Shown here piece after piece: positions 9,961 through 63,966 of a stretch of DNA of 64,000 nucleotides; position 1 is the stretch's first letter, and the number at the start of each line of letters is the position of its first letter. This DNA is from Takakia lepidozioides (lineage: Eukaryota; Plantae; Bryophyta): contig CM060734.1 of NCBI GenBank assembly GCA_030704615.1, positions 45,074,001-45,138,000 on the forward strand, in the 5' to 3' direction. A program made the translations under genes and the position numbers. The notes beneath the pieces were generated by a model. That model saw only the letters and a program-made list of their open reading frames with translations. It was not told where the DNA came from and made no database searches.

Positions 9961-10001
9961 TTAGAGTTCAGTACGCGATCGTCCTTGGGATTGGCCTCAT
10001 C

Positions 10002-11177
10002 ATGGGGTCGGGCAAGCCAAAGCGAAAGCGAAACGGCCCAAAAGATGATGATCCTGGTGAGCCCGACGGGGGCGACGTGTCACCGCGGCCGTTTGAGGAA
10101 GCGACGCTGGTTTCTGAAAACGAGGCCGCTCAAGAGCGGGAGGAATCCGAGGAGTCGGAGCCCGAGGAATCCCTAAGAGCTCCGACAGACCAACAGATGC
10201 CTCCCATGCCGGCAGCTTTTTGGGAAGGGTTGTTGGCGCAGTTTGGCGGGACGTTGAAAGACGTGTTGAAGGCGGCTAATGCCACTTACACTAAGGCAAA
10301 GTTCAAGGTGAAGCCTAAGGAACCCGACACCTTCGAGGGCGTCCGAAATCGGAAGGCACTCAACACCTGGCTCTTGGAGCTAGAACAGTACTTCCGGGCG
10401 GCTAAGTTGAGTGACGAGGATCGGGTGGAAGTGGCTCCCACCTATTTGAGGGGCTATGCTCAACAATGGTGGCAGAAACGTCTTCACGACTGAGGTCCAA
10501 GCCCGGAAACCTTGAACTGGAGTGGGTTCAAGGAATTGATGAAGAGACAGTTTGTGCCTCTCAACGCGTCCTGGCTTGCCCGGGACAAGATGAGGAATTT
10601 GAAGCAAACAGACGACATTCGGGGATATGTCCAGGCTTTCAATGTGCTTTTGCTCGAAGTCGCGGACATGGCAGAACCGGAAATGGTCTTCAACTTTGTG
10701 GTGGGACTGGCCCCATGGGCTAGGCGGAAGTTGGAGGAGAAGCCACCTAAGACTTTGAACGAGGCAATTGAGAGGGCTGAATGTTTCTCAGATGTCCCTA
10801 GGGGTGAAAGACAAGGCCGTACGGAGCTTAACCACAAGAAGACCCGGCGGGAAGGTGACTCCTTCCAACCGGAAAAGAAGTGGGATAGGCCACGCGGCGA
10901 CAATGGCACGTGGAAATCAAAGGGAGGGCCTTCACACGTCAAGGCGGCACCCGGTGCTTCGAAAGGAAAAGCGGGTGGAGCGGCTTATGGCGGACAGAAG
11001 GCGACCTTTGATGGAGTGTGTTTCAATTGCGAAGAGCCCGGGCACATGGCCAAGAAGTGCACGAAACCCCGACAATTGAACATGACTCGGGCAACCACGG
11101 AGCTGTCGGAAGATACCATCAGTCGCTTGGTGGAAGCGGTGGTCGCCAGGACTTGCAAGGTAGGCAAATATTCTTGA
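10002..11177 (+). pseudogene. gag: gag with CCHC knuckle and one in-frame premature TGA (10491-10493)
   Basis: ORFs 9948-10493 and 10512-11177 are in the same frame. Motifs PDTFEG..WL..LEQYF and CFNCEEPGHMAKKC. Confidence 0.9.
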
Positions 11178-14100
11178 GTTGTATCAGGAAACTGGCGCAT
11201 TGCGTAAAGGGAGTCACTTATTGTTCGTGGATGGGATAATATCCGGAACTAATGTGTCATTGTTGGTGGACACAGGAGCGTCGCACTCCTTCATGACACC
11301 GGCAACGGCACAAAAGCTGGGACTCCCGACAACTGACGTAGGGGCCTCTATTGAGGTGCGATCTGCCAAAGGAGAACCGCAATTGGCGACGAGGTTGGCG
11401 TTCGATGTTCCTCTTCAACTGGGGAGTTGGGAGGGACGTGAGAACTTCACCGTCTGCGAGATCGATGGAGTGGATCTCATTTTGGGGATGACCTTTTTGA
11501 GCAAATCCGGAGCGGTCATAGATGGCCGCAAGAGGGTAGTCACGCTGCCATGTTGGAATGGTGGCGAGGTCTTACGAGTTTCGGAAACGCCCAAACCCGT
11601 GGGAGGGCGAATAAACCTTCTGTCAGCAAGGGAGTGGGCCGTGGAGGAGGCACACGAGCCCCAATTTTTGCTCTACATTAGAGAAGTGAAGGGAGAAGGC
11701 GATGGAGAGCCGAGCCCAGATTGGATCAAGGGGATTTTGGAGAAATACCATGATGTGATGCCGGAGGATTTGCCAAGCGGCTTGCCACCGCGAAGAGGAG
11801 TTGACCACAAGATTGAGGTGATACCGGGATCGGAACCGCCTGCCAAGGCGCCCTACCGGTTGAGCCACAGAGAGTTGGTCGAGCTGAAGACCCAGCTCAA
11901 TGTCAAAGGGGTACATCCGGCCGAGTAAGTCACCCTACGGAGCCCCGGTGCTATTTGCAGACAAGAAGGATGGGACGCTGCGGATGTGTGTCGATTACAG
12001 GGCTCTGAATAAGGTGACTATCAAAAACCAGTACCTTTGCCAAGGATCGACGACCTTTTCGATCGGTTGGCAGGAGCGAAGTATTTCAGCCGGATCGATC
12101 TGCGCTCCGGCTATCATCAAATTCAAGTGGCGGAAGGAGATGAGGAGAAGACCGCGTGCAGGACAAAGTATGGTTCATATGAGTTCTTGGTGATGCCTTT
12201 TGGGCTCACCAATGCACCAGCGACATTTAGCACGCTGATGAACAGCCTTTTCCAGGAGTGGTTGGATGACTTTGTGATCGTGTACATCGACGACATCTTG
12301 GTGTATTCGAAAACAAAGGAGGAGCACCTGGAGCATCTCAAAAGGGTGTTCCAGAAATTGCGGGAAAGGAAGCTGTATGCCAAAGCTTCAAAGTGCAAAT
12401 TCGGGGTCACAAAGTGGAGTTCCTGGGGCATGTGATTACACAGGATGGGATCAGAATGGATGACAGGAAGGTGAGGGCCATCTTGGACTGGGAGCCTCCG
12501 ACTTCGGTCCCGGGAGTGCGATCCTTCCTAGGACTCGCCTCCTATTACCGGAAGTATGTGAGAAATTTTGCCAAGATTGCGGGGCCGCTGTCAGACCTTC
12601 TGTGTAAATCTAAAGTCTGGGCTTGGAACACCTTTTGTGGCCAAGCTTTTGCTGAATTGAAGCAGCGGATGGCGGAAGCTCCAGTCTTGAGAATCCCGGA
12701 GTTCGATCGTCCGTTCGAGATACATACAGATGCGTCGGACTTCGCGATTGGGGGTGTACTGATGCAAGATGGACGTCCAGTGGCTTACGAAAGTAAGAAA
12801 CTGAATGAAGTGGAGCGACGGTGGCCGACGCACGATAAAGAGATGAAGGCGGTGGTGCACTGTCTTGAGCTTTGGCGCCACTATGTTGGTTCCAACCCAG
12901 TGAAGGTGTTCACGGACAATGTCACGGTAAAGTATTTTGCCACGCAGCCCAAGTTGTCCCCAAAACAACTTAGGTGGCAAGATACTTTGGCGTGTTTCGA
13001 CGTGGATATCCAGTACAAACCAGGACGAGACAACGTGGTGGCCGATGCTCTAAGTAGAAAGCAGCAGCTCTTATTGGTGTATAAGGGCGAGACGGCGCTC
13101 CAAAGGAAGATCCGGAAGGCTTGCCGGAAGGATGAGCTGGCGAAGTCCGTGATGCAGGACTTGAGGATGGGGGTTAAATCGCAGTTCCACTTGCAAAATG
13201 GACTGCTCCGGTATAAGCAAAAGCGTCTCTACGTGCCGAAGGGAGGGATCAGAGATAGCCTCTTGAGATAATGCCATGATAGCCCGCTTGCGGGTCGCGG
13301 CGGAGCCAAGCGCACTGCGGCACTCTTGAAGAAAGAGTATTTTTTGGCCCAAACTGAGGGAGGAGGCAGAGGAGTATGTCAAGACATGCACCACATGCCA
13401 ACAAACCGGAGCAAGTACAAAAGCAAGCGGGGCTGTTACAACCCTTGCCGATTCCAGAGGGGACTTGGGAAAGCGTCTCGATGGATTTCATGACTGCTAT
13501 GTCGCTGTCAAAAGGATTTCGATGCAATCATGGTGGTGGTGGATAGGTTCAGTAAAATGGGCCATTTCATCCCACCAAGGAGACGGCAACGGCGCAGGAG
13601 ACAGGGCGACTTTACTTCGCCCACGTCTTAAAGCATCATGGAGTCCCGAAGGATATTGTCTCTCGACCGCGATCCAAAGTTTACGAGTAAATTTTGGAGG
13701 GCACTTGGAAGAAGATGGGGACGAGGCTGAAGATGAGCACCACCTTCCGACCTACGACCGACGGCCAAACAGAAAGAGTGAATTCCGTAGTGAAGCAGAT
13801 CTTGCGGAATTACGTGTCGGCAGACCAAACAGACTAGGTGGAACACTTAGACGCGGCAGAGTTTGTTATAATAAACACAAACACTCCGCAACGGGAGTTT
13901 CCCCTTTCGTATTGGTCTATGAAAAGCACCTCTGGTGCCGACACGTTGGGCCGCCCAGGACGTTGAGGAACCGGCAGTAGCGGCGGTACTGGAAGAACGC
14001 GAGCGTTTGTTGAAGCTCGCAAAGTACAACATTGCCAAAGCTAGGAAACGGTATGAAAGGTAGGCGAATCGGAAGCGGAGGGAAGTGAAATTTGAGGCAG

Positions 14101-14544
14101 GCACGGAGGTCTAGTTGAACATCAAAAATTTCCGACTACCTCCGGAAGTGAGTCCGAAGTTCGTACCTCCGTATGCGGGACCCTTTCGCATTCGGAAGGT
14201 TATGAATGAGGATGTGTATGAATTGGAGCTGCCGGCAAACAGCAAGGTGCACCCAGTATTCCATGTCTCCCTTTAGAACCTTACTTCAAAGATGAAGCGC
14301 GTCCGAATCGGCATCAAGTGTTGCGTCCGCCACCTATGCTGTTGGATCATGAAAATGAACCTGAGTACGAGGTGGAGGCAAACTTAAGTCGAGGAGGTTC
14401 AAGAACCGAGAAACGGAGTATCTCGTCAAATGGAAGGGCTATCATCATGTGGAGGCATCTTGGGTGCGTGCCTCAGAAATGGGAAACGCATCCGAGGCGG
14501 TCGCAGCTTCGAAGGGCGGACCTCAAAAGCGGAAGAAGCGTTGA
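11164..14544 (+). pseudogene. pol: pol (protease, RT, RNase H, integrase, chromodomain) with many frameshifts and stops
   Basis: LVDTGASHSF; YIDDILVYS; TDASDFAIGGVL; decayed integrase; EYEVEA...EYLVKWKGYHHVEASW chromodomain; ends KRKKR*. Confidence 0.93.
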
Positions 14545-15440
14545 TGGGGACATCAACCTTGGAGCGTGGGGGAGGAAATGCATGCTTAGCCCGGCTTAGC
14601 TAGCTTAGGAATCCGATTGCAAAAACTTGTATTGTACAAAATTGTATAAATGAAATGGTTCCAATGTTGTGCGTCCTATTTTGTTTGGAATGGTGATGCA
14701 TGGTATGGTTGGCTAGTGTGTAGAATGCATGCTAGCTTATAAAAGTGGGAGAGGTAAATTGGGTTAATCGTGTGTTTGCGTAGTGCCGAAATCGGGTGAC
14801 CCCCATCCAAGGGCAAGGAAACTTGCGCCTTCTTTGGGAGTTCACGTGCTAGTGCGCACCTGGCGTGCGCGTACTATAACTGCGCTACCGAGGGGGTTGC
14901 CTTGTAGTGCGGGCTAACGCGGAAGCTACGTGCTTCCGTTCACGTACTATAATCGTGTAGCCTCGGGACGAAGTCGTAGTGCGGCTTCGGCGTGTTCCCG
15001 TACCTCAGGCCAGCATTCCAAGGCGGACCCAATTGTAGTGATTGGGGCGCACGGTTGGTTCAAGGTTATCTTCCTAGTCAAAGAGGGTTCCAGGTGAACC
15101 CTTGCTCAAGGTGATGCCAAAAGCGGCATCATGAGCGGTCGCAAGCAATGTTGTTGCAGTAAGGCGATTCGATCCTCGGGAGGATCGTTCCTTGGCCTTG
15201 AAGTAGGCCAAGAAGAGTGCACTGGGAGGAGCTGGAGAGGCTCCACCCTTGGCCGGGACTTGGAGGAAGTCGGCCGAACTAGCTAGTGGAGAGTAGAGTC
15301 AAGTGTGGGGTTTGGTTCTTTGCCATGGGACGCATGGTACGGAAACAAACTCCTTGATGTGGGACGCCACAACTTGGATGTTCGTTTCTACAAAATGGAC
15401 AAGTCGATGAGGACATCGACTCCCTGTTGGTAGGGGTGTG

Positions 15441-16166
15441 TGTCGCGGCCCTTTGCCTTGAGGGCAGGGGGTCGGGACACATGAGGGGCTGCCCCTGTGG
15501 TGGGGGCAGCGGCAGCGATAGGTATGGGGGGCTGAAGCACCCTTGAGTGCCCAAGGCACTCAAGGAGGCGGAGGCGCTCACTAGGTGGAGCCCCGCACAC
15601 CGGGTTGCGGTGGGGGTGGCTCCACAAGGGGTGGTGGTAGCTTAGCGGGACTTAGTGGGGGTGGCATAGGACTCACCATGGGGGCGGAGACCTCGTGGTG
15701 GGAGTCGTGGGGAGTCTTGGGACTCATCACGGTCCATAGGGGCCGTGGTGAGTGGGCCAAGACTCACCGCGACTCATCACCGGGAGTCGAGGGTTTTCGT
15801 GGTGGTTCGCCATAAAATGGCATGGCTGGTTGTGAAACCCCCGCGGACAGCTACAGAAGTATATATAGGGAGTAGTAACCCCGAGAACGGTGCAAGCCCG
15901 TTGGTGACCAAAAACTAGTGAGTAAGCGAGCGAGCCGGAAAGCGACCAAAGAGTGGGGAGCTGTTCCGGACTGCCATCTACCAAAGGGAATTCCACTAGG
16001 CCCAAATAGGTGGAGGGTTTAGTGGGAGAGCGAAGGGGGACCGTTATGTCCCGGTGAGCAGCCGAAGCTCCAAGTTGGCCCGGCGGCCAGGTTGGGAGTC
16101 AGGCGCGCGCATCAAAGCGAGTAACTATGACTTGAAGGGGAGCTTACCGAAGTGAGGTCCGCGACA
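15441..16166 (+). repeat. 3' LTR (726 bp) preceded by the PPT-like GGTAGGGGTGTG
   Basis: Near-identical to 9220-9946. Confidence 0.97.
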
Positions 16167-16277: not shown

Positions 16278-17027
16278 GCTTCTCATTTAACAATAATAGG
16301 GTCATGAATGCCCGTACATGTGGCAACGACGGGGCCCGCGTGTGGCCAAGGGGGTCGGAGAGGGTGGGAGCGCCCCTACCCGGACCCCGCCAATCGTCTG
16401 TCCGGCAAGCGGGTCTGCTGGGGCCCACAAAACACATGAGTTAGTCTGCTGGGCCCACAATATGCACATAAAACATTAGTTATTGCATAGATTTGCATAA
16501 GCGGTGGGTAGTGTGGTGGTTAAGAGCAATGAATGATACATATGAGGTTTGATGTTGAAATCTCGTTAGGTTGTACTGTGGCAGTAATGTGTGTTTATTA
16601 ATAATATATTTTTCGAAGGTATGCCGGTCTGCTGGAAGGTCCAAGCCGGTCTGCCAGAGGTGCCGGAGGGGGGGGGGTCTGCTTGGAAAGTCTGCCGGTC
16701 TGCTGGAGGGTCCAAGTCGGTCTGCCAGAGGTGCCAGGGGGGTGGGTCTACTTGGAAAGTCTGCCCAGTCTGCTGGAGAGGTGCCAGTCCGCTCGTCGGT
16801 CTGCTGGAGAGTCTGCCTGCCTGTCCGCTAGAAGGTTGGAGTCGGTCTGTTGGAGGGTCTCCCCAGTCTGTTAGAAGGTCCACCACGGTACATGAACAAG
16901 GACTTAGGAAAATTTCAGAATCTCGCCCACCCAGTGAATGGGCGGTGGGCTTATGAGCTCACCCCAAGGGTCGTACTGGCGGGGCCCGCCCGTGCATTCA
17001 TGACCCTATTATTAAAAAATGAGAGCC
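16278..17027. mobile_element. Non-autonomous MULE-type MITE, family copy 1
   Basis: TIR GCTTCTCATT..AATAATAGGGTCATGAATGC / GCATTCATGACCCTATTATT..AATGAGAGCC, 9-bp TSD CTTATATGT, and internal GGTCTGCTGGAGGGTCC subrepeats. Confidence 0.85.
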
Positions 17028-23100: not shown

Positions 23101-26100
23101 AGCAGGGGTGGAATGGGACATTACCCTTAAGGCCCTCATCGGTCGAGGGCTGGAAATCAAGAGCTGACAAGGATGATGCTGGAACTATTGAAGGCCGTGA
23201 TTCTAGCTGGAAGGAGCAGCTGAACACATCTGGGAATCAGATTGCAGGGAAGGAGGTATATTACATGTCTATCCACATGGGGGTTATTTTTTGTGCTTTT
23301 CTTAAGTTATCTATAGTTGGGAATAGAATCAGCCACATATCTAAGGGCAGGTTATATTGCTGATATTGCAACATGAATTGAAAATTTGAGGACATGCCAA
23401 AGAGTGAATGCTCCGAGGTTTCTTATATGTCCTAAGAAAGTATGCTATGAGGTGGTTTAACCTTACTTATAACTCGACAGCTGTAGAGCTCGAGAGAGTG
23501 GTCGAAGATTGTTTCAGCCTTAGGCAAAGGAGGAGGCAATTCCCAAGTTTCCGCTGACTGCCCAAACTTTGCATAGTCTAGGCCTTTTACCATTTTCTGT
23601 TACAGGGATTTCCAGCAGACTCTTCTATGAGCAGTTAGCCAGAGAATGGTGCATGATCTTCCCAGGCTGTGAAAGTGTTCTTTTCAATAGCTGACACAAT
23701 TTGCCTCATTCAGAGTCCAACCTCTCCATTTTGCTGTGAGTGACAGGGATTATGGTCAATTTTAGTTGGGGTCTATTGCCCTGGTCATGGTTTTGTCTTC
23801 GACAACATCCAACCCAAACTCTCACCCACTGGGCCTGCCGTAGATGAAATAAAGCTGTTCTTCTCTCTACCCATAGAGCTCTCTATTGGGTAGATTCAGC
23901 CAGGTTACCTCTCTTGTCTGCACTCCTATGTAGGGGAAGGGTTCTGAAAATTTCCAGGGCGTGTAGGTGCATACTTGAAAGAGCCGGGCTGATTCCTATT
24001 TTTCAGGCTGTGCCGAATCGCAGTTCTCCACTTTTTTCCTTGACAATTCATCTCTCCCCTCATATTGAGGTGAGAGCAATGCCATCCTGAAGGAGATATA
24101 CTCTTTTTCTGAATTCAAAGCCTAAGGAGGCGATTGGGACTTTGTTTCACTTGGATTCTCTCTAATGCCATTCTAAGTGCTGGGGAAGTTTTCGTAGTCT
24201 GAAACGACTAGTTCATGCCTGCCTTGTAGTGCAGCAGGTTCCTGGTTGACACCTGCAAAGTGAGCCTTTTCCTGGTGGGTGGCCCGGTAGTTTCGCTGGT
24301 GACCAGTGCGTGTCAATTATTCGAACTTTGTTGTCAAACAAGGCAAAATGGTCATTGATCTAGAATTCTTATCGACTTGGTGTCCTTTTGGGCTATCAAT
24401 TCTGCGCAGGCATCACAAGATGCTGAACACATTAACATCATAGGCCAAACCCCTTTTCTCTTGAAAGAAGAGAAATTTTTGACAGGCAGGCTTTGCTGAG
24501 AAACTGATGCCTTCAGAATCACCGATTCTGCTGCAGTTTTCAGTGGTCTTCCTGCGCACTTTGCTGGTGCTGTATACCACTTCAGAGAGAGATCTGGAAG
24601 GTATTTTACCTGGTTTTGCGAGGCTCTACAAACATTTGTCTTCTGTGGCAGGTTTGGTTAATTTCTTTCTATTCCTTCATATTCCTTAGGCTGGGCCCAC
24701 AGAATGTACTCATAAGACGTTGTTTGCCGTAGCCTTCTGGCCATTGACCCTGCGCCCAGTTTGAACGGAACACAAAGGGACAGAACCTACCTTTGTCAGG
24801 GGCTGACACCAGTAGTAAAGACTTACCTTGGAATAAATAATTGATCCGGGTTTTCCACATATCCTCTAGAAATCCCTTAACACAAGCATCAACCTGCTGT
24901 GTGTGGTTTGCCCAATAACTAGGCCCCAAAAGGGCCTGGGCTTTTGGCTCAGCCTCGAGACTTTCAATGTTGGTAAACAGAGGTACAGGCACAAATCCCT
25001 TGATCGAAAATGAATATTGTCTTCAGGTTGCCCACACAACGGGCAATTGCACTCCCCTTTCCTCTCTGCTTCTGTTTGCAGTTCAAAGGTACGCATCCCA
25101 CCCTGAGTTAAGTCTCTAGTGCCAAGAGTGAGTAGACCCTTGAGGTCATCCATGATGTCCTCCCCCATGTCACAGACTGGAAACAAGTTCGCTGTTCCCA
25201 CAGAATTTACTCGTAAGACATTGTTTGCCGTAGCCTTGTGACCATTGACCCCGCGCCCACTTTGAGCGGAACACAAAGGGACAGAACCTACCTTTGTCAG
25301 GGGCTGACGCCGGTAGTAAGACTTACCTTGGAATAAACAACTGCTCCGGGTTTTCCAGATATCCTCTAGAAATCCCTTTACACGAGCATCAATCTGCTGT
25401 GTGTGGTTTGCCCAGTAACTAGCCCCCAAAGGGGCCTGGGCTTTTGGCTTAGCCTCGAGACTTTCAAAGTTGGTAAACAGAGGTACAGGCACAATTCCCT
25501 TGATAGATTTGAGGAGAACCCCGGACAATGAATCAGAAAATGAATATTGTCTTCAGGTTGCCCACACAACGGCAATTGCACTCTCCCTTTCCTCTCCGGC
25601 CCCACAGAGTAGGTTTGTCAGGCAGATGAAACTGGCCCTTAATGAAAACCGAGATCCAGAACTAGATTACAAAAGCAAGGGCATGGTCTTACCATGTTTT
25701 GCTTAGTTGAGCCTTGGTGTTGGTATGCTAAACTTACCGCCTACCTGCAGCCTGTGGGTGATGTCTCTCACTCTCTAAACCAGGCATGAAAATGTGGGGA
25801 CAAACTGCCAGCTGTTAAGTACAGCCTGGTTCAGTGAAGGTTTTTATTCTCCTCTAACAAATGATTGGGTGAGATCCTGGACACATGAGTTGGCTCAACT
25901 CAAAGCTAGAACGACCATCAGGGTTGGTGGACCCCACCTTTCATTTTGAAAAGCAGAATGTAAGATTACCCTTCATATGCACAGGGGGCAGTACCTTGCT
26001 TGGTAGGGGAAGTGGTTCTTATCTTTGCTGGATATGGCTGGGGTAATCTCTCTTACCCGTTGTGTGAAGGATGGCTTCAAAAATATTACGTATTTTGACG

Positions 26101-29441: not shown

Positions 29442-31162
29442 TGGAAGGACAGCAACTTAGCTTGGAGGGCAAAGGAAGTTCAATTCCTATGTTGATGGGT
29501 GAGTTACATATTGCTGATACTGGACTCCCATGTCAGTCCAATGGTGTCTCCATGAATTGTTACAGTTCTTCCATATAAAGGCCTGGCAGAAGTGCACTCT
29601 CTCCTGTGCTGGAGTAATTCTTTCTTAATCTTTGTCCCACATCCATCAGTTCCGACGCACAGCATCACATAAAGGAACCAGTGCACATGGGTTCGCCCAT
29701 AAGCAGGACGGGTCAATTTTCTTAAAACCGTATGGACCTAGAATCAAGCTAGGAGATGTTGGTGGCTTGCTACCGTGGTGTACTGCAGTGGGTGACATGT
29801 CCACTGTCGCATTTTTTGTAACTTCAAGCCATCACCTTGTTGGGTTTTAAAACGTTTCATTTCATACCTTGTACCGTCAGGAGAGGAGGATGGTGCGGGG
29901 ATTGCACCAGGTCCACCTCAGTCGTCTCCATGCTGTAGAATCGAGCTTGAAGTAAAGTCACTCTTAGTAGTCAAATACATATGGTTGTTTTAACTTTGTT
30001 AAAGCGTTTGGGCTTAAGAGGTCTTCAAAACACTCAGTGCCTCGTTGCCTCCTTTTTCTATTTGTTGCTTTGCAGCTGTTATAAACCTTGTATCTGAATA
30101 CTTGCAGGTGCTGGAGATATTAGTTGAAGGTCTGGCTTGGCTTTCACCTGATGCTCACCAACCCCAATAGAACACCGACGTGGGATGGATCTTTTGGTGG
30201 TGAGGAACCCCTGCCAAGGATTTTGCACAGTAAACTTGTCTGCTTAGACATTTTACCATACCTGTCTTGGAGTTTCCTCATATCCTATGGTCATAAGCTT
30301 CCAAGCCCTGCAGAATGCAAGTGGAGAAATGGAGTTGTTGCTACCCCATCGGCCTTCAATTCAGAGTTTGAAGTCAACATTGGCATGTTGTGAATATCAG
30401 TGCAAGATGGATATAAGTGTATGTCCATGACTGGTAAGATTGACACTGTAAACAAATGTAAGTAGCTTGTTGCTCCACATGATCCAATACAGAGTGTGTT
30501 TGGCACATACATACCCAGCCCCCTTCATCAGCCAAGAGAGTCCTTTCAGCTCGACATCTAGCAATTTCTTGATGCGATGGAAGAACTGCCTTTGGTTGTG
30601 AAGACTTCTTTATCATGTCCCTAATTTGCAGGTGAGATGGATATGAGATTGAAGTATGCGTTGGGACTGAAACGAAATTTTGTGAAATGGGAATTTGAAA
30701 TTGGAAAGTGGTTGTGCTATTTTTTGAAGATATGCTGAAACGACGCACTAAGATGGGGATTGTTGGAGCATAAATTGTTTCATTTTGCTGGATATTGCAC
30801 AGGTTTGAAACTGGGAAGGGAAAGATTATAGATGCGCACTTGCCATCATAGGAATGTCAATTCTGTGGATTATAGCTGAGACTGCAAATGCAAATCATAA
30901 GGTCGGCTAGATAATGAAAAAATGATTGTTGAGATGGTACTGAAGCTGGGGATATCTCTAGTCTCTAAATATGACCACCGCACCCATCATGCAGCTTCAC
31001 CCTATTAATTCTCGTTCCGTTATCCACTTTAAACCGTAGGAACCTTCATCTCATTGGATTGAGGTGCCAAAAACTCAGCAGAGCCTTGTGTTACAATCTC
31101 TATGGGTATTGCTGGAGGAAACAAACTTGCTCCTCTACATTTCATCTCATCTCATGATATCT

Positions 31163-31415
31163 AAGTTAAGTTTCATTTGCTGAAATGACTGTGTTGCCCT
31201 TGGGGAGAACAGACCCTTGTTTCTCTGGTTTGCTATGGAAACAGTAAAGTTAGTTTCATTTGCTGAAATGACTGTGTTGCCCTTGGGGAGAAAAGACCCT
31301 TGTTTCTCTGGTTTGCTATGGAAACAGTAAAGTTAGTTTCATTTGCTGAAATGACCGAGTTGCCAATTCTTGGGGAGAACATACCCTTGTTCCTCTGGTT
31401 TGCTATGGAAACGGT
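31163..31415. repeat. Tandem repeat, 83-bp unit x3
   Basis: TTTCATTTGCTGAAATGAC recurs at 31171, 31254 and 31337. Confidence 0.9.
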
Positions 31416-37374: not shown

Positions 37375-37447
37375 ATGTCCATATATATGTATGTATGTAT
37401 ATATATGTATATGTATGTATATATATGATGTCGTATATATATATATA
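37375..37447. repeat. (TA)/(TATG) microsatellite
   Basis: Direct reading. Confidence 0.85.
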
Positions 37448-37908
37448 GCGAGCCGCAGGAGCCTCTTCCCCTTGCAAGTATACTTGGCATTTTCATGGGT
37501 TGGCTCTACCTCTGTATGTTCAAACTAAACTAACATAACAACCTCACCAGAGCTATAAACTTGGCTAGTCTTTCACCCATGTCCTATTCTTCATATCACA
37601 CATCGTTGTTTGAGGAACAAATTGTTGAGTTTGCAAACGTGAGGAGCAAGAATACACACTTGATTTCATACTTATCAAGTGGAGGATAATCATCACAGGT
37701 GCAACTGTTGCAGCTAGGGATTGTAACCAGAGTTCCAATATGTGTTTTGATTTGTAAGTTTGAAATTGAGCCTTTGAAGGTGTGACTTTGTCTTTGGGTT
37801 GACCATCTGTGGAGGATGCATGTCTGTTGCTTGGCAATCTTCTGTACAGTTTTATTTTTTGACAAACAAGGTATGTCTAAAGTTCTGTTTAGCCAAGGGG
37901 ATGCGAAG

Positions 37909-42819: not shown

Positions 42820-45509
42820 GAGGGATGCTAGTCCGTGAGCAGCTCACGTGAGCAGGAAATCTTGTGAGCAGAATTCTGCTCACGTAGGATGACGTGGACC
42901 TGCTTGGGGCCTATAACCGCGGACCTTAAAGCCAAATAAGGCCTATTCCCGCGGACAGTAGACGTGTAAATCTAGGCAGTAGTCCCAGATACTATCTGGA
43001 ACATTTATGGACAGATCTGGAATATTTTGTCTGATAGAGGATGAATGATGGATGAATTCTGAATGAATGTTGGATGAGTAATGGATGAAAAACATCCCAA
43101 TTGGAGAATATTCTTGACTCGAACATTTTTTGATTTACAACTGTTTGTTTTTCACTTCTTCTTTGGTAGACTGTTTAGTATGTTTGAAATTAGAAGGTAA
43201 ATTGCAGAGTGACCATTTCCAGTACAGACTGAATGAACATGATATTTTGATTTTCTTTTTCACCTCTTCTTCTATAGATTGTGTAATATGTGCCGTCATA
43301 TGAGGGTCGGACACATGGAGCCGAGGCACAATGTACAAGAAGGAAACAGTTCAATTGACAGTGGGAGCGTCCACTGTATATCACGAGTTATTTTAGTCCC
43401 TTCTTCTTCTCCAGAGAGTGGCGAACTGTAGCATTGTACATCACATATCATATTTGAAGTTCACATGGAAACCAGCATAGAGTGAATTGCAGAGCAGAAC
43501 CCCACACGGTGTTAAAACGAAAATATGTTTGCATTTAAAGGAAAACGTCAAACATAGGTGGAGTCACTGCCACTACTCTCCGAAGTCATGTTATCCGCGG
43601 ACGACATTGCAATGTCGTCAATGTAGACACTAGCCCTATGACTAGAAAATTTGATCCTGGACTTGCGAGGACCAGGTAAGGGAGAGGGCATGGAAGCCAT
43701 TTCGTTTGTAATTAAGCTTGCTTTAAAAAACTGGCTTGGAGTCATGCTTGCGTTGACGCAAGCATAATTTCTAGGCCTCCTCAAAGGGAACTTTGGGGAG
43801 GAAAAAAAAAAAAAAAAAAAAAAACTGGCTTCGAATCATGTCAACGCAAACATGATTTCTAGGCCTCGAAGGGAACATTGGGGAGAAAATAAATAAATAA
43901 ATAATAAATAATAAAAACTGACTTCGAATCATCAACGCAAGCATGATGTACAGACCAGTGTTGGGCGGTTACCCGCCGGGACCCAAGTTAACCGCCGGTT
44001 CACATTCAGGTTAACGGGAACCGGGCCTATTCCTGCAGAACCTGACCCTGCCAATGGGGATCGGCATAGAACCGAACCGGTGGTTCATGCTGGGTGTGAG
44101 AACTGGAGAACCGGGCGCATGGGGATAAAAACAGGTTCAAGTTCTTGAACCTTTGGTGGGGCTTGGCATAACATGGCATAACCCTGGAGAGCTGGTGGGC
44201 CCCATGGCAAAACTTATTTAATGCTCTCAAGCTCCATGAGATCCTGGTTCAATGCTTCAACGCCATGACATTCTATGTTCAATGCTTCAACGCCATGAGA
44301 TCTTGGGTTCAATCTCCAGCTCCATGATATCCTGGCTAAGTTCATTAATGAGAATGTTAGAAGATGCCAATACTTGCCAGATAGCTGAATAGTAATTTTC
44401 ACCCATAAAATGTTACCCATTTTCTTCTACCAGTTTATTTAGAGTATTTTTGTTTTTATTTTTGGTGTTAGTGAAAATTAATAAAATCGTTGGATTTTAG
44501 TTCAAACATGTGGATGCATTGCTATTTAATCTCCCGGACTGATAAAATATTTTAAATCTAATTAAATTAAAAAAATTAAAAAAGAACCGGAACCGTGGTT
44601 TTTATCAGCAACTAACCGGTAACCGGAACCGCCCCAATGTTTAAAAGTTGGATCCGGAACCGGCTCAATATAAAAAAAACCGGAACCGTCTCTTGAAATA
44701 ATTGTGGAACCGGAACCGAAGGTTCCTTCACAAATGCAAGAACCGCCCAACACTACAGACCTTCTCGAAGGGAACTTTGAAAAAAAAAACTTTGAAGGTA
44801 GAGCTGGCTGGGAATTATGCTTCCGTTCACGCAAGCACAATCCCAAGGTCTCTTCAAAGAAAACTTTGGGGTAAAAAAAAAAAAAAAAAAAAAAAAACTT
44901 TGTAGGGACTTTGGGCACTTCCAAGTCCACCATATCTCATACCTAAATTATGTTTGCTTTGAAGCAAGCTTAAATTCTGTCCACTTGCAAGTTCAACATT
45001 TGTCTGGTCTCAATCATCCACTGTTGCTCCTAATATTGATGGTCTCTTCTTGGACTTCAAATGGTGCAGAATATGTCTCTGCAAGATATTGCGAACAGTT
45101 TTTGCAGCCTTCCCAATGTACCTCATATGATTGGTTTTGCCATCGCCATGTGCAATGATGTTGACATTTGCATTGCACATTCAAACTTCTGATGGTTCCA
45201 TTCAGTCATCCATGTTTCGTTCATCCAGCCATTTTTCATCCAACATTCATCCACCATTCATCACTTCCCATATTTCCTTCGTCCATATTTCATTCATCCA
45301 ACTGATTTTCATCACACATTCATGTCATATTGCATGCATGGAGCTCAATTCCTTTGGTCTCGGACGGCTTATGTTTCTTTCCATCTCACACGAGTTTGTG
45401 TGCACGGCATTAGGCTCTGCTTCTTCCTCGGTTATAGGCTCCGCTTCCCTGATCGGCTCACGCTTAGTGGAATTTGCTCACGAGATCTGCTCACGCGCTA
45501 GCTTCTCCC
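42820..45509. mobile_element. Non-autonomous Mutator-like element (2.7 kb) with a nested hAT MITE and poly(A)-linked ~95-bp tandem units
   Basis: 10-bp TSD CAAAGCACTA (42810-42819 and 45510-45519), imperfect TIR GAGGGATGCTAG..CGTGAGCAG / CTGCTCACGCGCTAGCTTCTCCC, and inverted GGATGAA/TTCATCC subterminal arrays. Confidence 0.8.
43956..44754. mobile_element. hAT-type MITE nested in the MULE
   Basis: TIR CAGTGTTGGGCGGTT/AACCGCCCAACACT, flanking TACAGAC(C) duplication, and subterminal AACCGG motifs. Confidence 0.85.
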
Positions 45510-46039
45510 CAAAGCACTATACGGCCCCTTGACATCTAAATACGTTAATAGAAGAAGCGAATCTAGATTAGTAAGTTAAGAAAGTTGACGGTGGAGACGT
45601 CGAGTAGTTTAGAAGCACTTGGTCTTTCATCCACGAATTGCAAATATTCACTGGTACTAAGCAGTTTTCATCCATGATTTTTGAATGAAAATCGTCAAGT
45701 GTCATATAACATTAACGATGGATGTATCTTTGCATCATGCTCATGTTTTCTCTCTACATAGCTAATGCTCTCATGATTAATGACCTATTTAATAATTAAT
45801 CATGTGTAATTTCATGAGACAGAAATATCGTATGACAAAATGATCTTTGTGAATGTTTTTATAGAGATTAAACCTACAAGGAGTGATTGAGTATTGTGGA
45901 TGCGAATCATGAGGTTCTTGCGAGAGTTTTGAATGAAGCAGCTTCAGCTTAGAACTCCATAATTTAGGTGCACAATGAATCATGAAGGCGTTAGTTTTGT
46001 TGTGCTGATGGATAGCCAAAACCAACACACACACACACA

Positions 46040-48010
46040 CATAAGACACCAACCAAAGTTAGCGTAAATAAGAGTCTCTTCTCCAAGTGGGTACCACCTT
46101 AGCTGCCCTAGAGCCAGATTCCAGTTCAAACTCCAGGCAGCTAGTACACTCAACCAATCCCTCAGTGAACAAATTGCAGAGGCACGTAAAAAGAGGGTGA
46201 AAGCCCTCCAGAAGTGTTTGTCTGGGTGTGTGTCAGAAGTGGATCGAACAAAGTTCATGTGATGACCACACATTCCAGACCTACCTTGAAGCGCGTACCA
46301 ACTTGGGAGAATACCAGGTCCACTTAGAGCAGAAGATGAAAATGCAAGTGGGGTTAATTGGTCCGCCAAGTTAGAGAAGATGTCCAAATAAATCTTCCAA
46401 AAAGTCAAACTCATAAGGGCACTTCAATCCATCCCCGAGCTCTACATAGACAATCTAGGTAATAAATCCTCTAAACCCAAAGAACTCTGTGAGATGGCCT
46501 TCCTGCACTTTAGTGCTCTTTTCCATGCTGACTCTGGGGCACTTCTTCTAATGAGTAATGGGAAGACCCCTGGGATCGACGGGATGCCTGTTGAATTTTT
46601 CAAGTCTTTGTAGGAGCATATCTCACAAGATTTCTATGATATGGCTAATGAGATCTGGATCAATGGAAGTATGCCAGGCCACATGGCGTAGGGAGTGATC
46701 ACTCTTCTGTTCAAAAAAGAAGACAAGGCTGATATAGGCAACTACAAACCAATCACCCTCCTAAATGTGGCATATAAGGTAATTGCTAAGGCTCTTGCCC
46801 TCCGCCTCCAGCCCCTTCTCCCCTCCCTGATCAGAACTGGCCAAACAAGATTCATTACTTAAGGGCAGGTATATCCTGGACAACGTGCTGTTGGCCCAAG
46901 AGGCAGATACCTATGTTCTGGCTTATAATCATGCCCTGGCATTATGGCTTCTAGACTTCGAAAAAGCTTTGACAGGGTGGACTGGGATTTCCTTGTAGCT
47001 GTTCTCAGGAAAACAGACCTCCCGGAGACGAAACGAAATTCGTTCGGTGGCCCAACGGATGGTTGCCCATCCAAACGGTTTTCGTTCGCTTCGAGACTTG
47101 GCCAGCATGTTCATCGTACCATCTGATAGGCCCCAGAGTAATATGAGATCAATCGAAATTTGTTCGATGGGCCAATGAGGCGTTCACTTGTCATCCAGTT
47201 TTTGTTCATTGCGGAAAAATAAAATAAAAAAATGCTCCTCAACTACATTCAAGTTTGTAAAGGAAAAATGAATAACTGCCCGGTGGTTGAAGCCCTTCGA
47301 GCAGCAACTCTCTGGAACATTTGGAGGGTCTGCTGCAGATGGTCCAAGTGAACAATCTCAATTTTAACCCATATTTTAACTCATGTTTTTTATGACCTCA
47401 CGGTCGCTGCTAAACTTGTCTGGGCTAAGCTTTGTGCAGAAATTGACAGGAGACCTGAGCACAGGGCGGCCCTCCTCACCACCTTCGCTTCTTCATGGGG
47501 AAGACAGGGAATCATCTGCAGTTGCGCTGATGTTGACTCCATCTCTTGGCCAGACTATTCATGTCCTCTGGCAACATCATCGAGCCCCCATCTTTAGCAT
47601 CCCCCGAGTTTGATAGATCGGAAATAAATTGGAAGCATATTAGGACTATAGCCAAATCTAGGCTTCATTTTCCCAGATAGGTTGTTGTTCCTTCCTCTGA
47701 TCCTTATGATTTCGCTCAGCCTTGGTGCTCTTTTTGGAACTATCTGCTCTAGGGTTCCAGCTTGACACCCATACTTCCAAAGGTTTCAATTTCCCTTTTA
47801 TGGCTACCTTTCGCTATAGCATATTTTAGTGAGACCTTGGTCTCTTAGTGTTTGTTCTTCTGGTATCTCCTACACGGTCCCCGTGTGATCAGGCCTCATG
47901 GCAGCCTTCGGGCATGTAAGGGTTTTAATTTTTTTTCCCTTCAATAATATTAATAAAGCTCTAAAGGGCTACCTCCCCTTTTATCAAAATAAAATAAAAA
48001 AATAAAAAAC
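46040..48010 (+). mobile_element. Decayed L1-clade LINE (RT fragment, internal deletion, 3' UTR and A-rich tail)
   Basis: KTPGIDGMPVEFFK..GVITLLFKK..NYKPITLLNVAYKVIAKALALRLQPLL..FDRVDWDFL, then AATLWNIW, ending CCCCTTTTATCAAAATAAAATAAAA. Confidence 0.85.
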
Positions 48011-48264
48011 AAATGAACAAGTGTACATGTATCGGTAAGAGATTGTGAAAGCAAGAGAAGCTATGAGAATGATCCACTACAAATATTCCAATATTTTTAG
48101 TGACGACAGCTGGTTTAGACAGCCATAGGATCCATTAATCATCAAAAAAAAAAATTTCTGCAGCCGACATGACAATTTCAAAAATTCACAACAATTTCAG
48201 GAGAAAAAAGAAACCCTTAAAAACCCCTAGAAAGTTCCTTAAAAATCGTTGATACATTTTCTTA

Positions 48265-48350
48265 GAGAGAGAAGACTCCGACCGAAGCCGGCGTAACTAA
48301 GAGCCACTTCGCCTTGCGACTACTGCCCCCTTTCGGGAGTGGGCCCTATA
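48265..48350 (-). mobile_element. ~86-nt structured SINE-like element, copy 1 (complete)
   Basis: 11-bp TSD ACATTTTCTTA and a (CT)n 3' tail on the minus strand. Homologous to 59041 and 61887. Confidence 0.75.
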
Positions 48351-50616
48351 ACATTTTCTTACTTTCATATTTCTTTTCTTTTGTTATCGAGTTTTCTATG
48401 TTGTCATTCTTTACTTTCACATTTTGCAAAGATGACCATAAGGGAAATAGTTGTCATAGTTTCATAACTTTGGGAAAGAAGGGAAGCTCGTGAGACAGCA
48501 GGAGCTATACATAAGTATCGAACCACTTTTTATACTTTCTGTTCATGTCACATGAATAATGACACAATGAGTTTGATCTACGCATTGCTGGATATTTCTC
48601 TAAAATGTGACCATAGAATTGCAAGAAGCACCTATTTGTTGGACATAAAGAAAACTTTATAATTGCATATGCAACCGATTTTGCATTTGGAAACAACCCT
48701 GAACACTTGCAATAAATTACATAAAAACAGATCCCACACTAGGGACTGTACATTATATACCAAATTCGACATACCATCCCCAAAATACACATGATAGCCA
48801 ATTAAAAGTTTAACATCTCGTCAGTGGTAGTGTGAAGGAACATGAAAACCCTAGTTTATGATATTGCAATACAACTTGTAGCAATAGTCCAAGTTTTAAC
48901 CTCCATAAATGGGTCAAAAAAAAAAAAAGTCCAAAATGAATGGCATTGAACATTTTTCCTTTTAATTTTACTTTCCTATTTTACTACATATATTTTTAAT
49001 GGACCGATCTCACATCCGTCAAACACCATTCACAACAATTTGTACATTCACTAATTGTTGGTACTAGCTGCAAATAGGACATACATTGCATATAATTATA
49101 TGCCCACATATAGAATGTCGGATTTTGTAGTTAAGTTTAGTGACCAAAACATCAAGATTCACAAATACAATGCAAATCCCCTAAAATACTGCAAAACCAA
49201 ATCTATTAATGATAATTGCATGAATGAGATTACATTTTCTTAAAAAAATATGACATAGATGTGAGTATGTAAAAGGGGTAATTTGTATGGGGGTATTATT
49301 TTTATTTTGCTCTTTATTGGCCACCCTATATTTACATAATTTTGTAAAATGCTGGATTTTCTGACAGGCTATGTTAATTATATTTTACTGTTGCTAGCAA
49401 ATTTCATGCACGCTATAGTAACAATAAAATATATGTACTATGTAGAGAGTAGAAACGTTCATATATCACTCACATCGGTGTGTGTGCCTAATGGTGTACC
49501 CGAGGGTTTTAAAAAATTTCCCTCTAATAATTCCAAATAAAATTCTATCAGGGCATGTGTCCCATATTTATTTAAAAAACAATTTAAAAACAATTACAGT
49601 AAAAAATAGGTCATTACTTGGTCGAAAAAAACTCATCCAAAGCTTGGGCATCAATAGCATTCATGCTGCAAGCATTCTGAACTTTGTCAAAAGTCATAGT
49701 AACTGAACTAATGATTGAATCCATATCTATCCATTTATTATATATTACATCATACTTGACAACGCGAAGGCCAACCCTAAACTCAAACTCCCTACGAACC
49801 AAGTGTCATCAACAGTTCAGGTCCCTAAATCCAAGTCTAACCCACCTGATGAACTAGTAACTAGACGACACGTGTCCCAAGTATTTATCATATGACCCTA
49901 TTGGTAGTTGTAAAAAAACGAAAAAAGAAAAAATATTCTAAACCCTATATTCATTTAAATTCCGAAACCACGATATATTGGTACCCATATTTATTTCTAG
50001 TTGTTCTCTAAATTTTATCTGCCAAGAATATATTGTACCATATTTTTCCTTGCACGTAGTGTCGGAATATTTGGAAGTCTCCTCCCCCCCCCCCGCGAAG
50101 AACATCCAAGATACACCTATTTGACTAGTTTAACTTTTAAGGCGGTCTTGTATCAAAACTACTCGGCCATTTATTGAATGCTCTATCACTACAAATTTTT
50201 TATATCCAAACCACTCATCTTTGGCCAAAATTTGTATGGGACATTTGAACCCAAAACCTATACACTCATTCCTTTTCAATGTCATCAATCAAACACACAT
50301 ACTACCTCATTGATATGCCTCGAAACAATATCAATATATTTAGCAAGGTAGCTTGTTTTGTTTGATTTTTCACGTTGACATCTCCCAAACTGCAAGGCCT
50401 CCACCCGGGTTCTTTATACCGCCGGAAAGCCCTCGATGAGTAGGGATGCATCGAGGTGGTTTCAAAATTTTGGACCTATGGTGTGTGAGATATTGAATTT
50501 CCAGTATGTTTTGTCACTAAAAATTCATAAAAATAACAAAATACCTCTTTTATAATTGAATTTGTGCTCAATGACGTACGCCACACTAGTATATGTAAAA
50601 TTATTGCAAAACAATA

Positions 50617-59040: not shown

Positions 59041-59085
59041 AGAGAGAAGACTTTGGCTGAAGCCGACATAACTAAGAGCCATTTC
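59041..59085 (-). mobile_element. Structured SINE-like element, copy 2 (5'-truncated, diverged)
   Basis: AGAGAGAAGACTTTGGCTGAAGCCGACATAACTAAGAGCCATTTC. Confidence 0.65.
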
Positions 59086-59896
59086 AAACTTTTGGCTATT
59101 GCTCTTTTCAAAGGTGTGTCCGAGAAGAAGAGAGAGAGGGGGAGACTCTTGCCAAAACAAACATAACTTATGGTGTCACCTCACTTGGAAGGGCTACTGC
59201 ATTCGGTTTGGAATGTGGACACCTTCTAAAGGTCATATCCCAAGCAACGTAGTTGCGCAACCCTCCCCCAATTACTCGATAGTCCCTAGGTACCCACACA
59301 TTAAGTAACCGGTTGACCCAGTTACTCCCGTTCAAACAGCTTGGTTGGCCATTGTTGGATGCCAGGTAAGTCCTCTATCATTGACACTAGACATACCTTG
59401 AGTGTAAAGAAGTTGGGTAATGTTCTCTAGCTTATGTTTGTTCGTAATGATCGTTGTGAAGGAATATATAGCCGTGAGATATATAGCCTTGAGGCGAACA
59501 AAGATTGTGTATTGAGGGAGTCCAATGTTATTATGAAGTGAAGACTGCAAGTATCGATACCGCCATAGATGCCTCCTGTAATGACAGAGAGGGTCAGCCT
59601 TCCATCCTTGATGTTTTAGTGTGAGAATTAACAAGACACATTTTACTTAAGATTGCATGGTTTGTTCTTGCCAGTATCGATCGTGGCTTGGGCTAACAAT
59701 TGATGGTTCCACCTCATCAAATGCTACCTTCTTACCTTTCATTTTGATGTTATTTCCATCATCATCATGGACCACCTTGGCAATATTGTGGGCAACCTTT
59801 TTTGTTTTCGAAAATCCATTAGCTCCTTATGCGAAAAAGAGGATTAAGAGTCATGTGCCACAAACCCTAATATGTGAAATCTATGTATTTTATGCC

Positions 59897-60662
59897 GCTT
59901 CTCATTATAAGATAATAATGTCTTCAATGCGCACTCGTGTGCATGTGGCGGGGGCCACGTGCAGCAAAGAGGATCGTGGAGGGTGGGAGCACCTCTACCC
60001 GTTGGAGGGTCTGCTCTAAAGGGTCCACCGCTGCTGGGTCCGTTGCTCGGTCTGCCACAGCTAGATCCGGGCAAGCGGGTCCACTGCGGTAGGTCCCAGC
60101 CAAGAGGGGCCCATGACCTGCTTGAGGCGCTGGTGGTGCACAAGATTAAATAGTTCCAAGGTTTTCAAAAAGTAGTGGGTCAAGAACAATGAATAAGATG
60201 TATGAGGTTTGGTATTCAATTTCTTGTTAGGTGGTAAAGTGTTTGGTATTCAATTCTTTTCAGGTGGTAATGTGTGTTGTTAATTAAACATTTTGTACAC
60301 TTGTTCTTTCTGAAATTTTCGAAAGTCCTTGTTCGTCTACGGTGGGGGACCCTCCAGTGGACTCTGCAGACCTTCCAACAGACTCGCTTGGCACTGTAGA
60401 GTGGACCGTCCAGCAGATTCTACAGAGTGGACTGGACTGTAGAGTGGACCCTCTCCAGTGGACTCTAGGTCCATCAAACCCTAAAGAGTGGGTGGACCCT
60501 CCAGCAAACTCTCTAGAACGGACTGGAGTGTCCAATGGACCCTTCGGCGGACCCGATGGATAGGCGCTAGATGGGTGTTGGGCTTATGAGGTGACCCCAT
60601 GGGGCCGTACCGGTGGGGCCCACATGTGCATTGAAGACGCTACTAGTAAAAAAATCGTTGGC
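59897..60662. mobile_element. MULE-type MITE, family copy 2
   Basis: 9-bp TSD TTTTATGCC, TIR core GTCTTCAATGC/GCATTGAAGAC, homologous to 16278-17027. Confidence 0.85.
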
Positions 60663-61644
60663 TTTTATGCCTTGGTGACGTTGGAGCCCTTATACCAATG
60701 GTATGTCCGAACATAGGCAGGTTGGGCAACTGCAGGGGGGCAAACAGTAGCAATATGGTAGTATCCAGTTCCAGGTGGTATGATCCGGGGGCCTTCCTTG
60801 CAGATAGGAGGTACCTGCACAATAGTGGTGGGGACCTTAAGTGCATTATAATGTTTCACGTTGAACTTTGGAGGCTATTATTCTTATCAAGTTTCTATTA
60901 GGCTGTTATTTACGCTAACTTCAGCCACAATGTTCTCTCTTAATATTACTTCTCCCCAAAAAATTTCATTACTACAACAACACATCATATTCTATGTTGT
61001 GATATGACAAGATATTGATACAATTTAGATTCATGAAACGAAACACGTGGTTTGAATGCCCTTGCATATGTCGTAGTCTTTTCTATCAACATGAAGAAGA
61101 AAAAGATTCTTTTGCTAGGTTGTTTGTCATTGTTCTCAAAGGAGTTGTGAATGACATGTTATTTTTTGATGTTTTGACATAGTTCATCTTGAAAAATGAA
61201 TATTGTTGCATAGACGCAAACTTGCAACTAGAACTGGTTGGACGTCAATATTGGATGGATAATCTGACATTGGAAAGCCTTTGCAGTATTGTCGGTTGTT
61301 ATATGTGCCAATTGTCGAAACATATATTCAAAAATAAAAAAAGAGGATTACTATATAATTATAGTGTATATAGAGTTTTCCGGTAGTTTTCCAGTAGGTG
61401 CGTGTATGGGGTGTGATGGGCCAGATTGTTGTAGCAGGCAATAGATTTTTTTTTGCTAGTTGCTGCCATATGTCATGGCAAGCGCAGTCGAACGATTGAA
61501 ATCGGCCTAGTTATGTATCGATCAAATATGATGATTTTATCCTACAAAATAACAACTGAAGAAGACATGTCATGTGTGAAGAATAGAGCCATGGTAAGGA
61601 ATTTTAATATTAGATGAATTTAATTCTTGCAACCTAAGAAGATT

Positions 61645-63966
61645 GGGCCCTCATTTTAAGATAATAGCATCTTCAATGCACTTATGGGCCCCACCAATTC
61701 GGCCCATGGGGTCACCTTATAAGCCCAGCGCCCATCCATTGTCCATTGGGTACGCCGGAGGTCCATTGGACAGTCCAGTCCGTTCTGGAGAGTTTGCTGG
61801 AGAGGGTCCACTCTGCAGTCCAATCCACTTTGCAAAGTCTGCTGGAGGATCCATTCCACAGTGCAGAGTGGATTCACTCTGTAGAGAGAGAAGACTCCGG
61901 TCGGGGCCAGCGTAACTAAGAGCCACTTTGCCTTGCGGCTACTGCCCCCTTTCGGGGGTGGGCCCTATAACTGCAGAGCGTAGCTTGGGCTCCAAGATTT
62001 TTTTTTAAATTTTATTTATTTATTTATTTTTTCGCTCGTCGGGCTTCGGGCCTCGGCCCTCCCTCCCAGCGGAACTGGTTTATCATCAAACCAAGATCCG
62101 ACGGCCTCGAAACCCGTAAACCAAATCTTGTGGCATTCGTGAAGCACTCTATTCCTGCACTCGCGTAAAATTCACTCGTTTACCGAAGCTAATGACTACC
62201 AAGAGGCGGGGACGGGCTCGAAGAAGATTTTTTTTAATTTGTTAAATATTTCTTCAGCATCTGGAAGGTGTAGCAGAATTGGAGAAGCGATTTGCGATAA
62301 TGCCAATAGAGACTGCCTAGCTGATTGGGTTTTTTTTTTTTTTTTTTTTTTGATGAGTGTAACTAACTTTTAGCCTCATACTAATGAGACTTCCTACGTC
62401 AATATACCAACCTGGATAAAAAGATAGGTGTCATGTGGGACACCATGTGATCGTAGAAATAGAGGGGTTTGTAGGACCGTGAGTACCCAGGGGTACCCTG
62501 GGAGACCTAGTGTGCGTTTGAAGAGTCAAATTCTAGTTGGCGTTTGTTGGTGATAATAGCTATGAGTGAGCGGAGTGCCGTGGGATGAATTGCTTTAAAA
62601 CATTTATAAATGGGAAGAATGGGGATTTTGAAGTTATCATGTATATCATTGATGCTGACGTTATGAATGCCGCCTCGAGTACCAGCGGTGATGACGGTTA
62701 ATGGGCAAGTTTTCTAGCCACGCCGTCGGATTGCAAGGATAAGCGAGGCATATTTTTGTCGTTTTTCTAAGATCGAGTCGTTAGGGTATCAATCATGGCA
62801 AAATGTAAATTCAATGAAGTGAATGGTGATTTGTGGGGATGGTGAGGAGGGGGGCAGGGTGTTGATTCACTCCGTAAGGTAGATGAACCTACTCTGGTTC
62901 ATTTAAGAAACACAACAGAATTGAGAGACGCACCTTTGGTACCGATATTTTTCTAACGTTGGCAAATGTAAATAAGAATTATTGCAAAAAAACAAAAAAA
63001 ACAAATGATAAAAATCGTAATTTTATCATTGGTGAATATTGAGTAGATCAGAGTGAATATTCAAAATATCAACAAAGTATCAAAGTATCAAAGTATCAAC
63101 ATTCAAAGTATTGAGTGATACTGAGTTGGTGAATATTCAAAGTGAAAATATATAAAATACCCATTGTGGGCTAGTAGAGGGTATTATTCTGGACCAGATA
63201 TCAACCCAACAGTGACAACGTAATGTCCTTAAAGTGCAAGCTTTTAATCCCTTTACTGCCTAATCTGTCCTCATAATGTGATCAAGTCCTGCCAGGAAAC
63301 TGCTCATGCAGTTTATAAAATAAACCTTTCACTTCTAGTAAACTGAGCTCGAGTAACTAGTACTGAACCTGTCCATCTCGATATGCATGGTGGTCCACCA
63401 CTGTCCCAAAACTGACCACGAACTGCTTAAAACTACTCGAGTAGAGTGTACAGACTAATCGTTGGCTTCCTAGAACTGAACAAGATGAAACTCAAACGTG
63501 ATCAGCGATCATGACATGTGATCCATAACACCTTAACTGTTCGGAGGCGTTCCCAAATATTAACTAATACTTCTCTCTAACTGTGCAGTAGTATTTGAAA
63601 TATGGACCACCGGTAATTATTAATCTATCCACTAAGTGATGTCATTATGATCATCTTTGAGTTGAAAGGGTTTACTGCCATTTCCATCCTGGCCCAACAC
63701 GTGACCTAATCTGGACCACTCATAATGAAAGCGCATCTGGTTGGTTTCATGTATTTTTCAAGGGTTCCATTTTAGAAAGTGGCTCGAATTAGGTTTATCT
63801 ACCTTATTAGAGTCTGGCCTTCTACTCTACAGTGCAGAGTGGTCTGCAGGGTCTGCTGGAGGGTCCACTCTACAATCTAGTCCACAGTCCGCTGTAGGGT
63901 CCGCCGCCATAGAAGAACAAGGACTTCGGAAAATTTTCAGAGAGAAACAATACAAAATGTTTAATC
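61645..63966 (-). mobile_element. MULE-type MITE, family copy 3 (reverse orientation, partial, interrupted by insertions ~61887-63820)
   Basis: Begins GGGCCCTCATTTTAAGATAATAGCATCTTCAATGC. 61660-61880 and 63823-63966 are the reverse complement of the right half of copy 2. Confidence 0.75.
61887..61970 (-). mobile_element. Structured SINE-like element, copy 3 (complete)
   Basis: Same ends as copy 1, flanked by CTGTAGAG/CTGCAGAG (8-bp TSD, 1 transition). Confidence 0.75.

Follow-up and report, generated by a model that had tools for sequence, protein, structure and literature searches.

An 86-nt retrocopied element, probably a stand-alone LINE-type 3′ module, in a 64-kb window of Takakia lepidozioides DNA

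Short non-coding elements derived from the ends of LINEs include the R2 SIDEs, the Bov-A units of BovB and RIME of ingi, all of which have no small-RNA head and retain a 5′ part of the LINE (ribozyme or promoter) together with its 3′ end. In stringent LINEs and SINEs, as studied in eel and zebrafish, a common 3′ hairpin is critical for retrotransposition (PMC1636434, PMC4176376). Among the Repbase families surveyed, non-A 3′ repeats are found in flowering-plant RTE and in green-algal RTEX and RandI LINEs (PMC3472496, Table 1). Here we describe an 86-nt unit present in a 64-kb stretch of DNA (hereafter the window, which means the whole stretch analysed). The unit is a real retrocopied element made of a folded RNA and a short TC repeat. 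We consider it probable that it is a head-less SINE-like retroposon, consisting of a 3′ recognition module of the stringent-LINE type alone and copied by target-primed reverse transcription.

Copies of the element and their ends

A repeat search of the window grouped copies 1, 2 and 3 into one family, all on the minus strand (Table 1), and the family and its coordinates confirmed the ~86-nt element in three copies that an earlier note on this DNA had described. Read on the minus strand, copy 1 starts with TATAGGGCCCAC and ends with GAGTCTTCTCTCTC; after the helices P1, P2, P3 and P4 come the spacer AGUCU and a tail, (UC)4. The first base (TATAGGG) is identical in copies 1 and 3, and copy 2 begins within four bases of it; the fixed 5′ end is based on three close copies in this window only. 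That the two copies with a common first base carry different TSDs had also been noted, and this was found again (11 bp for copy 1 and 8 bp for copy 3). The TSD of copy 3 (CTCTRCAG) is weaker than that of copy 1, since it is 8 bp long with one mismatch. The two ends of the element (TATAGGG... and ...CTTCTCTCTC) do not form an inverted repeat. TSDs with a simple-repeat tail and without inverted termini are the signature of target-primed reverse transcription and not of a DNA transposon; a MITE or other DNA transposon was rejected on the lack of terminal inverted repeats and the unequal TSD lengths.

Table 1. Positions in the window of the element copies, their TSDs, the related modules and other features
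Feature	Position	Strand	Remarks
Copy 1	48265-48350	(-)	86 nt; covariance model 109 bits
Upstream TSD of copy 1	48351-48361	(-)	TAAGAAAATGT; exact 11-mer adjoining the element
Downstream TSD of copy 1	48254-48264	(-)	TAAGAAAATGT; exact 11-bp duplicate
A-box-like string in copy 1	48304-48314	(-)	AGGCGAAGTGG; positions 37-47 of the copy
Copy 2	59041-59125	(-)	Covariance model 86 bits; about 62-70% identity
Copy 3	61884-61969	(-)	Covariance model 107.9 bits; 90.6% identity to copy 1
Upstream TSD of copy 3	61971-61978	(-)	CTCTGCAG; read directly
Downstream TSD of copy 3	61879-61886	(-)	CTCTACAG; overlaps the end of the TC tail
Diverged full-length module (c4)	59135-59226	(-)	27.6 bits, E=3e-5; C/T-rich tail
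Diverged module (46 kb)	46037-46112	(-)	27.9 bits, E=3e-5; (TG)n tail
Probable diverged three-way junction alone	37447-37510	(-)	15.5 bits, E=0.04, borderline
Probable diverged relative	25961-26053	(+)	14.9 bits, E=0.06; sequence-only model 16.9 bits
Weak partial match	60885-60940	(+)	10.9 bits, E=0.67
Decayed L1-like RT start	46392-47100	(+)	Three frames; typical motifs around several stops
Weak RT start, RVT_1	46692-46859	(+)	E=5.9e-5
Gypsy-type LTR retrotransposon	9220-16166		gag, protease and RT-RNase H ORFs
LTRs of the Gypsy element	9220-9946 and 15441-16166		~730 bp
Long imperfect inverted repeats, GGTCCAC/CTGCAG-rich	60283-60645 and 61662-61864		~1 kb apart
Further repeats of the same motif	63821-63965 and 16845-16920
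Long inverted repeats	4195-4850 and 5813-6746		229, 104, 67 nt and more; 88-95% complementary
96-nt repeats	43731-43826 and 44804-44899		83% identical; 1073 nt apart
83-nt unit, three tandem copies	31162-31414		95% and 61% identity to the first
Tandem duplication, ~500-bp unit	24690-25596		91-93% identity
RING-H2 finger coding stretch	8026-8151	(-)	zf-RING_2, E=5.5e-11

Copies 1 and 3 differ at eight positions, all of them transitions. Copy 2 has 25 changes, with G>A or C>T accounting for 15, and a CpG count of two, compared with seven in copy 1; by its sequence, it is an old copy decayed by deamination. It had been taken to be 5′-truncated. In register, however, it reaches GGACAC, the decayed equivalent of GGGCCC, and is barely truncated, as at most the first four bases are missing. 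Directly upstream of copy 2 lies the C/T-rich (TC)n tail of the older module c4, and copy 2 was therefore inserted into a relative's TC tail. In copies 2 and 3, tail and target share TC; in copy 1 the identity does not go beyond one base. Copy 3 is located just outside one arm of the GGTCCAC/CTGCAG-rich inverted repeats, which resemble a TIR element or foldback arms; in an empty-site comparison of these paralogous arms, they diverged before the insertion point. A second set of long inverted repeats in the window flanks a centre of 1–2 kb and is a large foldback or TIR element.

The position of the 5′ ends bears on the origin of the copies as well. They could be extreme 5′-truncated by-products of a longer LINE or SINE with the module at its 3′ end, without any self-sustaining 86-nt lineage, if reverse transcription or the template RNA stopped preferentially at the 5′ base of the module. 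An element without a recognisable promoter would agree with such an origin, as would the related modules with other flanks that are present in the window. However, all three close copies end within four bases of each other and two of them at the identical base, which is unlike random truncation, and no longer copy of the element's subfamily occurs in the window. We regard the by-product origin as unlikely.

Diverged relatives and the four-helix fold

By MFE, copy 1 folds into a three-way junction with an additional 3′ hairpin, as first proposed: a closing stem P1, hairpins P2 and P3 capped by GAAA and GCAA loops, respectively, and a separate P4 with a UUCG loop. Both the three-way junction plus C(UUCG)G hairpin and the sequence details quoted in the earlier note (the GAAA, GCAA and UUCG loops, and AGUA...GAA around the second hairpin) were thus recovered in copy 1. 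In folding energy the three copies did no better than dinucleotide shuffles (z = 0.62, -0.85 and 1.18), and the same held for the diverged relatives described below (z about zero). Copies 1 and 3 differ at five stem positions, and base pairing is retained at four of these; each of the five is a single transition (GU versus GC), as might result from decay alone.

The three copies, together with the proposed fold, were used to make a covariance model, which was run unfiltered on both strands of the 64-kb window. Besides copies 1–3, the search returned four further diverged modules (Table 1). Module c4 is a diverged full-length module of another subfamily, in which double substitutions, some of them transversions (in P1, G-U to U-A; in P4, G-C to U-A), preserve P1, P2 and P4. 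The 46-kb module has lost most of P2 and has C(UUUG)G as P4. The borderline junction retains GAAA, GCAA and AGUA/GAAG, is without P4 and is followed by (TA)n, and the plus-strand relative, whose likeness is mainly in sequence, retains GGCAGUA ... GAAGUGGUUCUUA, the 3′ hairpin and a TC-rich end. The tandem duplication of a ~500-bp unit is located just upstream of this plus-strand module; the window also holds a shorter tandem array, of an 83-nt unit.

Covariation was analysed in the seven sequences, two of them borderline, with an alignment partly fitted to the model. In the model-fitted alignment, 85.8% of the cells were paired, compared with 40-52% in slid controls, and 12 pairs had changed on both sides, compared with 2-5 in the controls. 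As a model-fitted alignment leans towards the model, MAFFT and RNAalifold were run independently of it; the same four helices were obtained, and 11 of 17 pairs were compensated. A sequence-only model made from the same alignment was then scored against the structure-aware covariance model. Module c4 rose from 9.0 bits to 27.6 bits with structure (a gain of 18.6 bits) and the 46-kb module from 15.2 bits to 27.9 bits (a gain of 12.7 bits), showing that pairing contributes 13-19 bits for these two modules. Stem covariation beyond C-to-T decay, proposed earlier as a check on the fold, is seen in this seven-sequence set as double changes, with transversions in c4. Taken together, the four-helix fold is moderately well supported and probably real.

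Across the modules, the GAAA loop is kept in four and the GCAA loop in three. Four modules from different subfamilies have UUCG, UUCA, UUCA and UUUG as the P4 loop, and copy 3 has CCCG. UUCG is probably the ancestral P4 loop, since UUCA and UUUG are its two possible CpG-decay products. AGUA and GAAG, which flank P3, are among the best-conserved parts of the module. With AGUA/GAA strands beside a short GNRA-capped stem, this part may resemble the sarcin-ricin/loop E (bulged-G) motif; the consensus is matched at the sequence level in copy 1 and most relatives, copy 3 having AAA for GAA.

A comparison of the regions upstream of the seven modules revealed no common DNA or protein-level similarity. 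No common body was found 5′ of the modules in the window, where the 5′ boundary of the old copies is not fixable. That no module runs into a common body is the opposite of what is seen with ordinary truncated LINE copies; likewise, copies running 5′ into a LINE ORF with scattered ends, which the earlier note had named as the mark of an ordinary LINE 3′ UTR, were not present in the window.

RNA families, promoters and the source of the 5′ end

An Rfam search over the window gave no match at the gathering score. With the limit relaxed to E<=10, the surroundings of all copies gave only chance matches (rsmX, 17 bits, and DLEU2_6) and none to a ribozyme, tRNA, 5S or SRP RNA; ARAGORN reported no tRNA over the window. 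A Pol III-derived head (tRNA, 5S or 7SL) was rejected on these ARAGORN and Rfam results. A 5S or tRNA ancestry, based on resemblance by eye, was rejected with no model match. Copy 1 contains an A-box-like string with 10/11 of TRGCNNAGTGG (Table 1), and the P4 hairpin contains a TTCG core resembling a B box. As an internal Pol III promoter these were rejected, because the A-box-like string is too deep for a start at base 1 and the B box is not convincing. No source of transcription for the element was evident.

The A-box-like string, together with the fixed 5′ end and the compact conserved fold, would also suit retropseudogenes of a cellular small structured RNA. In that case one or a few externally promoted master genes would fix the 5′ end at the transcription start, and the RNA would be copied by a LINE enzyme owing to the resemblance of its 3′ part to the LINE tail. 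We consider such an origin highly improbable: the string is too far inside for transcription from base 1, the Rfam search at E<=10 gave no family and there is no tRNA. Furthermore, the module occurs with other tails, and therefore fits a part of a transposon better than a gene.

A type III hammerhead requires a CUGANGA core, GAAA with an A15.1-U16.1 pair and, at the junction, a cleavage triplet; an HDV-like ribozyme has a nested double pseudoknot and cleaves itself at its 5′ edge. In the element, the junction reads CAGUAGU and departs from CUGANGA at the invariant positions U4, A6 and A9, a G-C pair stands beside GAA in place of the A15.1-U16.1 pair, and the cut would come after base 11, inside the element and not at base 1; the type III hammerhead was rejected on each of these points. 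The HDV-like ribozyme was rejected since the two hairpins between the P1 strands misfit the double pseudoknot and Rfam gave no match. Around the copies, Rfam matches at E<=10 were absent for hammerhead, HDV-like, twister, pistol and hatchet ribozymes. Hence the junction sequence and Rfam bear out what had been seen by eye, i.e. that the CUGANGA core is absent and that HDV, twister and pistol do not fit.

The RNA might still set its own 5′ end, as a new self-cleaving ribozyme or as a substrate mimic for an RNase P-like processing enzyme. The element begins a few bases 5′ of the closing stem, and the strand order of the junction and the approximate loop sizes are those of a type III hammerhead. 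However, no known ribozyme family matched at E<=10, and the three hammerhead positions, the place of the cut after base 11 and the HDV topology all speak against it, so that we give this explanation very little credence. Of the two readings offered in the earlier note, the small SINE of neither tRNA nor 5S origin is upheld by the variable TSDs, the repeat tail and the lack of a Pol III head, whereas the self-processing RNA found no ribozyme match.

Our preferred explanation remains target-primed reverse transcription of the head-less module. A stringent-type LINE reverse transcriptase would bind the folded module, and priming would occur on nicked target DNA, often reading TC and helped by its TC identity with the tail. 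The short RNA would then be copied to its own 5′ end, giving TSDs of variable length. An RNA starting at base 1 might arise if longer transcripts, from a LINE, a SINE or by read-through, were processed at the foot of the fold; otherwise it might come from an externally promoted master gene or from self-cleavage.

Search for a partner LINE and comparison with known systems

The element was most likely moved by a resident LINE enzyme. We scanned all stop-to-stop ORFs of at least 55 aa in the window against Pfam, with the Gypsy element excluded, and a single weak RT start (RVT_1) was found, within a decayed L1-like RT start (Table 1). This remnant is on the opposite strand, with copy 1 ~1.2 kb downstream, and no module is present at its 3′ side. 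It is the only non-LTR trace in the window, where the RTE/RTEX fragments mentioned in the earlier note were not found. Neither a LINE carrying the module nor one with the same 3′ end, the latter being a check that had been proposed, was detected within the 64 kb. Clustering of the 120-nt stretches preceding each of the 62 TC tracts brought out only the three copies, with no second family ending at a TC tract.

Other coding and repeated sequences of the window are listed in Table 1. The Gypsy element is young, because its LTRs are 96-99% identical, and the best public protein relatives of its RT-RNase H are just 65% identical. The RING-H2 finger stretch is probably part of a host ATL-type gene. 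Each of the two 96-nt repeats contains a palindromic hairpin (ATGCTTGCG...CGCAAGCAT) and ends in ~23 A; they may be retroposons with a poly(A) tail or else mark both ends of a duplication.

Outside the window, scans of metagenomes for the module gave ten matches, all without the rest of the module and attributed to chance, and scans of viral and prokaryote genomes gave none. The phrases 'headless SINE' and 'promoter-less SINE' were not found in a literature search.

If the 86-nt unit truly multiplies itself, it would mark a lower size limit for a LINE-dependent parasite. Such an element would be an RNA surface gripped by the reverse transcriptase plus a priming repeat and nothing more, and would show in compact, natural form which RNA element a plant stringent LINE recognises. 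It raises the question of how an RNA with a fixed 5′ end is made without a promoter. Were the RNA to set its own 5′ end, any read-through transcript holding a copy would become a ready template, and the multiplication of a promoter-less 86-nt element would be explained. For annotation, a high-copy short repeat of this type would escape standard SINE-finding programs that search for a tRNA, 5S or 7SL head.

Compared with SINEs headed by tRNA, 5S or 7SL, the element would be alike in size class, TSDs, LINE-type tail and dependence on a LINE enzyme. It is, as they are, a retrocopied insertion with TSDs, but has no Pol III head. It differs from the R2 SIDEs, Bov-A and RIME in being the 3′ module alone. 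In form it is like the tails of eel UnaL2/UnaSINE1 and zebrafish L2, in which a short folded RNA also lies upstream of a simple-repeat tail (PMC1636434, PMC4176376); there too, the fold is common to otherwise different elements and is recognised by the LINE protein, and TSDs are present. In contrast with the single stem-loop of these tails, however, the module here is a three-way junction plus a hairpin, and it also stands alone, without a LINE body or a SINE head. A non-A simple-repeat tail, a feature associated with 3′-end-specific recognition, is shared with flowering-plant RTE, which has (TTG)n, green-algal RTEX and RandI/Dualen (PMC3472496, Table 1). On our best reading, the element is a SINE-like one reduced to a LINE-type tail and unusually minimal.
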